DNA from: Paragordius varius
Lineage: Eukaryota > Animalia > Nematomorpha
Assembly: GCA_964247055.1 (NCBI GenBank)
Contig: OZ176053.1
Coordinates: 6,014,001 to 6,078,000, forward strand
Length of the DNA stretch: 64,000 bases
Direction of reading: 5' to 3'
Part shown: in pieces, positions 7,100-10,000 of the stretch
Layout of the letters: every line of letters starts with the position of its first letter
Numbering within the stretch: position 1 is the first letter of the stretch
Notes under the pieces: generated by a model
What the model was told of the DNA's origin: nothing
Databases searched by the model: none
Seen by the model: only the letters and a program-made list of their open reading frames with translations
Position numbers and translations under genes: made by a program

Positions 7100-10000
7100 T
7101 TATATATCGGTTATAATGAGTTCATCAACGCCCCAATCTTCAAATGAACCGTCCGGTAAATATCTTCGAATTATTATGGGAATTTTGCGGGCTTTAAGTT
7201 CTTTCATGGCTATTTGCAAAGGGTCAGTTTCTCCCTCTAATTCAACCATCAAAGGGGCACACATACTAATAAAAATGGATGGATAAATTATAAAAAAAAC
7301 CCAAAATGTAAAATAAAAATTCATTAATCAAAATATTATATTTTTTAAGCGTTTTTTAAAATTAAATCCAATTTGTTTGATAATTGATAGATTTGAATAC
7401 ATCAGTTAGCTAATCTTAGACTAGACAAATCCCACATTTCCCACACTTCCTTTTTATTATCATCACCTGCCTATTGTCAGAACCCTATTCAATCAAACAA
7501 CTATCTGCCTTTTCGTACGCCATTGCCATTTCTACCACCATCTCCAACGTAACAGGTTTCCTATCAAACATTGCATCTAGAAATTTCGTGAACAGAACTA
7601 CTTCCAATCTCTTGATTTGTAATCCTCCAACAAACCCATCTCTGATTCTTACCAAAGTTGCACCGGGCAGCACATTCCGTTACCCGAATCAAATAATCCA
7701 TCACTGATTCCGTGGCTTCTTTGCGGAGTTGCGTAACTTGGAACCTGGCTGCAAACACATTGTATGTCGGAGAAAATTTTCTTTTTCCGTCGCTTCGTCA
7801 AACAAAACTAAATTATTCAATTTAACGCGGATTTTTCCTTTAGACCATTTCTTTGTATTCGCTTTTCCGGCAGATGCTGATTTTTTCTGAGCTGGCTTAG
7901 CTTTTGTATCTTTTCCTGTATTCTTTTCAGTTTTAGGTGCCATCACTCTTTCAAAGGAAACCAGGAGTATGAAAAGGCGGATATTGTTTGATTGAACAGG
8001 GTTAGGCAGGTGATGATAATAAAAAAGAAGTGTGGAAAATGTGGGTACGTGCATGCGATCAACTGGTGTCCCGCTTCAAACAAAGAGTGTTACCGATGCA
8101 AAAGACGAGGTCATTTTGGCAGGTGTTGCCGGCGCGTTAATATACTGAATGGTAACAATAATAATAATGAAGCCCGAACGCAAGCAATCTGATGGCCATT
8201 GGGTGAGGATGGTGTACGATACCGAAGCTCAAATATCATTATTGATTGGGAAAAGCACGTGGCTGGAGATTAGAAGGCCGACCTTAGCACCCGCGGGTCC
8301 AATAGTTGGGTGTAACCATCTAGGTGTAGAGGTGATGGGACAATGCGTGGTAGATGTGAAATGGAATGGTATGGTCAAACAGTTGGAATGTATGGTTACC
8401 AGGGAGGATTGGGGTAACATTTTTGGGTTACCATGGATGAAAAGTTTTCAATGTAGATTTACAGATGCTGCCTGTGTAAAGAATGTTAGTTGTGTGGATT
8501 TAAATAAACTTAAGGATTTGTTTTGTGATGGTATTGGGTGTTACACAGGACCGCTGATAGATTTGAATACATTAAGTTAGCTAACCTTAGACGAGACAAA
8601 TTTATATATTAGATTTGAATACATTTTTGATGACCTTTTATGTTTGAGTTAAACTATTGTATCAATTTTGTATTTAACCTGCACACGTTATTTTACCTTG
8701 GTTTAACATGTAAATATTATATTCACAAAAAGTATATAAACATGGCAAACTGTATATAGTTTAGATTTTGCATATTATCTCAATAAATATTATTGTTTTA
8801 CGGTTTCTCGATTTACTACATTTGGCGCGGTCGATTTTTTTACCTCATTACATTCGCGCATGGAGAAATTAAGTCTGGAAGCATATGATCCCGCAACTAG
8901 CTTTGATGATTATATCGATTACATAAATAGAATGTTAAAAGTGAAAATTCAAGAAGATAACGAAACAAAAAAAACTTATTATTGGCCTACATCGGTCTAT
9001 CCCCTATTCCAAAGTTGAAGAAATTCTTTTATCCCGTACTGTTAGAGGAAGTGGGCTGGGATGCTTTGGGAAAAAAATATTTGCTCCGACATACAATGTG
9101 TTTACAGCCAGGTTCCAGTTTACGCACGAAGGGAAGCCACAAAATCAGTGATGGATTATTTGATTCGAGTAAAGGAATGTGCTGCCCGGTGCAACTTTGG
9201 GCAAGATACAAAAGAATCAGAGATGGGTTTGTGGGAGGATTACAACTCAAAAGATTGGAAATAAATCTGTTCACAAAATTTCCAGATGCAATGTTATGGG
9301 AAACCGGTTACGTTGGAGATGGTGGTAGAAATGGCAATGGCGTACGAAAAGGCGGACAGTTGTTTGATTGATCAGGGTCCCGACAATTCGCAGGTGATAA
9401 TGATAAGAAAAAAGTGTGGAAAATGTGGATACGTGCATGCGATCAACTGGTGCCCCGCTTCAAACAAAGAATCTTACCGATGCAAAGGACGAGGTCATTT
9501 TGGCAGGTGTTGCTGGCACGTTAATATAGTGAATGGTAACAATAATAATAAGGAAGCCCGAACGCAAGCAAGTCTGAATGGCCATTGGGTGAGGATGTTG
9601 TACGATACCGGAGCTCAAATATCATTGATTGGGAAAAGCACGTGGATGGAGATTAGAAGGCCGACCTTGGCCCACGCGGGTCCACTAGTTGGGTTAAACC
9701 ACCAAGGTGTAGAGGTGATGGGACAATGCGTGGTAGTTGTGAAATGGAATGGTATGGTCAAACCGAGGAAGGATTGGGGTAACATTTTTGAGTTACCGTG
9801 GATGAAAAGCTTTCAATGCAGATTTCCAGAGGCTGTATGTGTAAAAAATGTTAGTTATGTGGATTTAAATAAATTTGAGGATTTGTTTTGTGAGGGTATG
9901 GGGTGTTACACTGGACCACCCATCAAGTTGTTTCTCAAAAAAGGGAGTATCCCCGAATGATTTGCAGCCAGGAGGGTACCTATCCCGCTTCAGTCTAAGA

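Follow-up and report, generated by a model that had tools for sequence, protein, structure and literature searches.

Positions 7789-7964 of the window (the whole 64,000-nt stretch of Paragordius varius DNA analyzed here) carry a spliced 5' piece of the RPS25 mRNA, oriented on the minus strand and enclosed in a composite Gypsy retrotransposon. We consider it probable, at roughly three chances in four, that a Gypsy reverse transcriptase (RT) switched templates onto spliced RPS25 mRNA and that the resulting inverted block was made part of the element before integration. The first-pass annotation had proposed template switching onto RPS25 mRNA during reverse transcription, and this proposal is supported by the absence of introns, poly(A) and a target-site duplication (TSD) belonging to the piece itself, by a sense-to-sense joint with matching bases at 8/9 positions, and by an independent RPS25 chimera elsewhere in the genome. 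Inspection of the joints indicates further that gag is not colinear around the RPS25 piece; part of it is duplicated in inverted orientation, and the piece forms the loop between the two copies.

The RPS25 piece comprises ~175 nt read on the minus strand from 7964 to 7788, with a ~21-nt leader (7964-7944, CCTGGTTTCCTTTGAAAGAGTG) that includes the pyrimidine run TTTCCTTT, followed by 52 RPS25 codons, where the ATG occupies 7943-7941 and codons 2-52 extend down to 7788. It matches the Pfam Ribosomal_S25 profile with E=1.9e-8 and 34.8 bits, against a curated cut-off of 28.8 bits. The piece is truncated at its 3' end, not its 5' end. No poly(A) is present at the piece, the RPS25 reading instead passing straight into gag, and no direct repeats or TSD of its own lie around it. 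Translation from the RPS25 ATG enters gag in a frame other than that of gag and ends at a stop at 7701, which yields a chimeric ORF of 80 aa on the minus strand (7701-7943). These results, together with the comparison to the parent gene described below, bear out the first-pass description of an intronless 52-codon RPS25 N-terminus with a ~20-nt pyrimidine-run leader, truncated 3' and lacking poly(A) unlike LINE-made pseudogenes, and running on in a non-gag frame into an ORF of ~80 aa. A TSD and poly(A) belonging to the fragment, which the annotation had named as findings that would speak for an independent retrocopy, were looked for at the piece, and neither is present.

To identify the source of the piece, the window's own genome (110.6 Mb in 44 contigs; ~27% GC here) was searched at the DNA level, with all 5 candidates scored. 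RPS25-like DNA is found at three places only, namely the window itself, contig C6 with a full gene and contig C8 with a short piece; a profile search of the genome returns the C6 gene and the window fragment only. The C6 gene, in the C6:2374730 region (G000:C6:2374733-2375077), is the sole full RPS25 gene in the genome. Three GT..AG introns interrupt it, measuring 21, 25 and 25 nt in order, and the ATG is immediately followed by intron 1. The piece in the window is colinear with exons 1-3 of this parent, and it contains neither intron 1 (21 nt) nor intron 2 (25 nt), which makes its origin from RNA unambiguous. A parent gene with introns was thus recovered by the genome search that the annotation had called for, and its other named escape, an intronless parent copied at the DNA level, is contradicted by the three introns. 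No other RPS25 retrocopy able to act as a DNA donor was found in the genome.

Comparison of the piece with the parent, made exon by exon and against genomic DNA, gives 93% identity. The coding part differs at 11 of 156 positions (8/90 in exon 2 and 3/63 in the exon-3 part), and the leader at 3 of 22. Nine of the 11 coding changes are non-synonymous, producing 8 amino-acid changes, which indicates that the RPS25 reading has drifted neutrally with no sign of selection. The genome DNA search found no other Gypsy copies that carry RPS25 or span the RPS25 joints. This count, also suggested in the first pass, identifies no copy with the same junction beyond the window and hence no secondary retroposition; that is to say, the chimera never spread and did not transpose further. 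[quoted passage not shown]

The short RPS25 piece on C8 is a chimera of its own. At C8:636583-635270 (minus strand; also delimited as 636531-635270), the RPS25 leader and ~90 nt of coding sequence without intron 1 are fused, with an overlap of 2 nt, to a retrocopy of a P-type (E1-E2) ATPase. The ATPase copy is intronless and broken, and the exons of its source gene lie apart at C4:5779052-5782244. This chimera is independent of the piece in the window and supports the reverse-transcription reading. Another ATPase retrocopy (C8:632722-631549), ~3.7 kb from the first, forms part of a tandem duplication of ~3.7-4.3 kb, and weaker ATPase copies occur at C8:622033, 702540 and 717117. In the C8 chimera the RPS25 leader reaches to -32. 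Spliced-leader trans-splicing was considered as a source of this longer leader and rejected: the 24-nt string upstream in the leader occurs once in the genome, and matches with up to 3 mismatches are no commoner than in the control. The C8 leader extends to -32 and the piece in the window only 19-23 nt upstream of its ATG; copying of the latter may therefore have ended before the true cap, ~10 nt from the RPS25 5' end that the C8 chimera reaches.

The element that encloses the RPS25 piece occupies 7385-12787 and lies between two identical 5-bp repeats, its TSD, one copy of ATAAT at 7380-7384 abutting the TG of an LTR stub and the other at 12788-12792 adjoining the CA end of the 3' LTR. The chance of a 5/5 match at such spacing is 0.0027, and seven other full copies of the family also have TSDs of 5 bp (4 perfect and 3 matching at 4/5 positions). 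The order of domains (Asp_protease, RVT_1, RT_RNaseH, Integrase_H2C2, rve), that is PR-RT-RNase H-integrase, confirms a Ty3/Gypsy element, and the LTRs bounded by TG..CA, the PBS beside the 5' LTR and the 5-bp TSD are all found as in that class. The family comprises at least 40 copies that fall into two groups, s1 and s2, by diagnostic sites in gag and the LTR. The s2 group makes up about a quarter of the sampled copies, and the gag arms in the window belong to its s2a sub-lineage.

Inspection of the individual segments reveals that both groups contribute to the unit. All segments named here lie on the plus strand unless stated otherwise, and the stretch 8555-12787 (copy B) was used solely as a coordinate ruler for mapping. 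At the left, the LTR stub (7385-7430) corresponds to LTR nt 1-46 and has the s2 state at 3/3 diagnostic sites. It joins an inverted s2 gag segment on the minus strand (7431-7788, copy-B 9428->9069), which leads into the RPS25 piece and from there into sense s2 gag with the zinc knuckle and protease (7964-8554, copy-B 9339-9917). A complete LTR bounded by TG..CA follows (8555-8820, s1 state at 6/7 diagnostic sites), its first base adjoining protease sequence. The s1 internal region that it opens (8821 to approximately 11800) contains the PBS (TGGCGCGG..), gag, PR, RT, RNase H and the integrase zinc domain, but is split into many ORFs, and all ORFs of the element are broken. Beyond it, a 3' internal segment (11801-12529) is s2-like and closest to the copy L043. 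The 3' LTR (12530-12787) carries the s2 state at 6/7 diagnostic sites along with L043-specific states, ends in CA and pairs with the stub at 7385-7430.

The simplest reading of this arrangement would be a composite, in which an outer, older s2 element (E2) owns the TSD, with the stub as its left end, and a nested s1 element has recombined with it, the 3' internal segment being read as E2 resuming after the recombination. An earlier view of one ATAAT-flanked LTR insertion thus holds in that ATAAT flanks the whole unit, but the unit itself is composed of two Gypsy subfamilies. Counted by diagnostic sites, the unit at first seemed a mosaic; sliding identity then showed a single crossover. From 8555 to ~11750 the sequence is s1-like, with identities of 0.93-0.96 to s1 copies, and from ~11.9 kb on it is s2-like and closest to L043, which places one s1-to-s2 crossover at ~11750-11950. 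We also considered the whole unit as one RT product of co-packaged s1 and s2 RNAs and rejected it, since a single crossover and a joint at exact LTR nt 1 make nested integration plus recombination simpler. Dating of the insertion by the 89% identity of the copy-B 5' and 3' LTRs was likewise discarded as invalid because these LTRs belong to different subfamilies.

Four joints delimit the rearranged part of the unit. J1, between LTR nt 46 and the inverted gag, is blunt, with 0 nt of microhomology and no ambiguous bases. J2 connects RPS25 and gag sense-to-sense on the minus strand through a 16-nt ambiguous zone (7788-7773, GGAAAAAGAAAATTTT), where the RPS25 mRNA (GGAAGAAAA) and gag (GGAAAAAAA) share the microsimilarity GGAA[A/G]AAAA and match at 8/9 positions. 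With a GC content of 27%, the genome readily offers A-rich microsimilarity of this kind. J3, between the 5' end of RPS25 and gag of opposite orientation, has 2-3 ambiguous bases (zone 7966-7964, TCC). J4, between protease and LTR nt 1 (8554/8555), has no ambiguous bases and coincides exactly with the LTR terminus, as would a junction left by nested integration. Gag lies on either side of the piece, as had been noted from the sequence earlier, but the gag on its 5' side (7964-8554) is opposite in orientation to the piece. The first ~90 nt of that segment form an inverted repeat with 7431-7520, and alignment of the two arms over 81 positions gives 92.6% identity. In terms of element positions, LTR47-9068 is missing and 9339-9428 is duplicated in inverted form. 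No private variants common to both gag arms alone were found beyond the lineage states of s2a.

A similar polarity pattern is observed at a second locus. The Gypsy copy at C5:12643766-12648297 consists of an LTR plus 4 nt, an inverted segment (10129->9304) and a sense remainder running from 9236 to the 3' LTR. It has a 3-nt overlap at the polarity switch, a perfect CTGCT TSD and no host sequence. This layout of LTR, inverted segment, sense remainder and 3' LTR matches that of the outer element E2 in the window. The existence of two TSD-flanked copies with the same layout favors assembly of the inverted block before integration. Another aberrant Gypsy piece, at C8:251784-253167, joins a sense LTR and 89 nt of leader to antisense PR, gag and leader; it ends in the PBS region (copy-B 8825) and has no second LTR and no TSD.

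The joints can be arranged into a sequence of events as follows. The polarity of J2 indicates that gag was copied first and RPS25 second. An RT copying s2 Gypsy RNA through gag would have left that RNA at gag ~9069 and switched, at GGAA[A/G]AAAA, to spliced RPS25 mRNA that was presumably co-packaged with Gypsy RNA in a particle. Landing ~175 nt from the 5' end of the RPS25 mRNA, it would have continued to that end or close to it, leaving a chimeric cDNA of antisense gag followed by antisense RPS25. In the favored continuation, a second nascent strand would have transferred to this chimeric cDNA at its free 3' end and used it as a template. The strand may then have jumped to a 46-nt nascent plus-strand strong-stop DNA and run off at U3 nt 1, an event that would give an integrase-competent end. 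The product would be a linear cDNA composed of the LTR stub, the inverted block of gag and RPS25, and sense gag-PR through to the 3' LTR, which integrase could have inserted into an intron of RPB6 with duplication of ATAAT. An s1 Gypsy would later have integrated into the protease of the dead-on-arrival E2 at 8554|8555, and s1/E2 recombination near 11.8 kb would have removed the 3' end of s1 and the PR-INT region of E2. We infer all steps after the J2 switch, and the order of the strand jumps, from end points only.

Assembly of the inverted block might instead have followed integration, although we regard this as unlikely. Here an intact s2 element would have integrated, and a later break in its 5' region would have been end-joined with capture of an inverted chimeric gag-RPS25 cDNA and deletion of everything from LTR nt 47 to gag 9338. 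In this reading too the RPS25/gag joint would be RT-made, and the TSD and both termini would survive. The lack of overlap at J1 and the 2-3 nt at J3 are typical of end-joining, which they would fit equally well. The captured gag, though, comes from the s2a sub-lineage of the recipient itself despite the minor share of s2 among the sampled copies, and the C5 locus has the same polarity pattern from the LTR with an intact TSD. Together, these observations point to a recurrent reverse-transcription route rather than to random repair.

Other explanations bear on the RPS25 piece or on the assembly. Chance insertion of a LINE-type processed RPS25 pseudogene into gag would account for the intronless state of the fragment, but not for the missing poly(A) and fragment TSD or for truncation at the 3' rather than the 5' end. 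Nor is the flanking gag one split sequence, since the arms have opposite orientations and share 90 nt; we consider this reading excluded. Long-read assemblies are known to contain artefactual palindromic joins, and a chimeric or fold-back read could in principle have produced the inverted arms. Every segment, however, differs by 7-12% from all other copies in the genome, a range that includes the difference of the two arms from each other and of RPS25 from its parent, such that no extant sequences could have been mis-joined. Misassembly would therefore seem very unlikely on the divergence of the segments, and DNA-level duplication of RPS25, which would have retained the introns, is excluded. 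The preferred reading thus remains a template switch onto RPS25 mRNA with assembly of the inverted block ahead of integration.

A switch of template in which reverse transcription leaves an LTR retrotransposon for a cellular mRNA is already known as LTR-mediated retroposition, a microsimilarity-dependent process (Tan et al. 2016, PMC5131818). The resulting retrocopies are partial, often 3'-truncated and flanked by discontinuous LTR-element sequence, with a median microsimilarity of 6 bp (PMC5131818), and earlier cases cited there include Ty1 in yeast, maize Bs1 and HERV-K/FAM8A1. The locus in the window resembles this kind in being an intronless, partial copy, more 3'-truncated, with discontinuous LTR-element flanks (here s2) on both sides, microsimilarity at the switch point, no L1 hallmarks, a genic insertion site, and LTR ends with an integrase-type TSD. 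In contrast to that kind, its second joint does not return to the same element polarity, and the retrocopy lies inverted together with 358 nt of gag, bounded by the 46-nt LTR stub on one side and by sense gag on the other. It also differs from the retrocopies in PMC5131818 in that it keeps the 5' end region of the mRNA, is single and is old.

Complex LTR-retrotransposon insertions formed by template switching (Sabot & Schulman 2007, PMC1950507) share with the unit one TSD and three LTR-derived segments, of which the outermost two are alike and the inner one is different. Those complexes contain two complete internal regions, each ending at a PPT (PMC1950507). The first core in the window, by contrast, comprises the inverted gag block and a 591-nt stretch of gag-PR that meets LTR nt 1 directly, no PPT lying between them, and a single s1-to-s2 crossover lies downstream. 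A truncated first core and a joint at exact LTR nt 1 are better fitted by nested integration plus recombination than by a one-cycle complex of the Sabot-Schulman type.

Likenesses to LINE products are also apparent. In LINE-made bipartite and tripartite chimeric retrogenes, such as the Magnaporthe MINE chimeras (PMC2104539) and the L1 U6 chimeras, the second template of the RT supplies the 5' part and is copied through to its 5' end; the chimera in the window shares this arrangement, which fits the C8 RPS25::ATPase chimera too. LINE chimeras, however, carry poly(A) and LINE-type TSDs, whereas the chimera in the window is embedded in a Gypsy element with an integrase-type 5-bp TSD. The inverted arm resembles another LINE product. 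L1 5' inversions, which arise by twin priming, have an inverted 5' segment, a sense remainder, a short duplication at the joint and one TSD. This likeness is one of outcome only, given that L1 is target-primed and the cDNA in the window would have been double-stranded and inserted by integrase.

The genic site of insertion is the housekeeping gene RPB6. Its two halves on the minus strand (13863-14033 and 7100-7324) match positions 2-23 and 30-53 of the Pfam RNA_pol_Rpb6 profile, each alone falling below the cut-off. The last RPB6 exon is at 7100-7262 and the previous exon lies within 13863-14033, which places the composite in the last RPB6 intron, of ~6.6 kb. Because the RPB6 halves also lie on the minus strand, the RPS25 fragment is sense to the RPB6 pre-mRNA, in agreement with the first-pass annotation. 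Of the ~6.6 kb of this intron (7262-13863, minus strand), the Gypsy composite accounts for ~5.4 kb; an intron of this size is very large here, introns of 21-26 nt being frequent in this genome. Just downstream of RPB6 there are nested inverted-repeat pairs at 5832-5947/6843-6958 (116 nt, 84%) and 6025-6078/6722-6775 (54 nt, 91%), and these may represent the termini of a small DNA transposon or MITE.

Folding of the gag arms as RNA gives a stem of ~85 bp with an MFE of -228 kcal/mol and z = -14, although such a stem follows automatically from the arms being an inverted repeat. We attach little credence to a more far-reaching reading, in which the arms (7431-7520/7964-8045) within RPB6 pre-mRNA would be a constitutive hairpin source of anti-gag small RNAs and jumping between nascent cDNAs would regularly yield integrable inverted copies. 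If the hairpin were such a source of small RNAs, this could explain the persistence of the locus.

The present locus is apparently an inert, decaying relic with no copies elsewhere, and the phenomenon that it represents is already known, in an example that is single, old and decayed. It has no evident function, and its value is not that of a new principle but that of an illustration and of a seed for a genome-wide count. The window and the C5 copy together suggest that nascent cDNAs in one particle can template each other. The RPS25 piece itself provides a clean natural example, from an animal genome with introns of 21-25 nt, of a host mRNA copied by the RT of an LTR retrotransposon.
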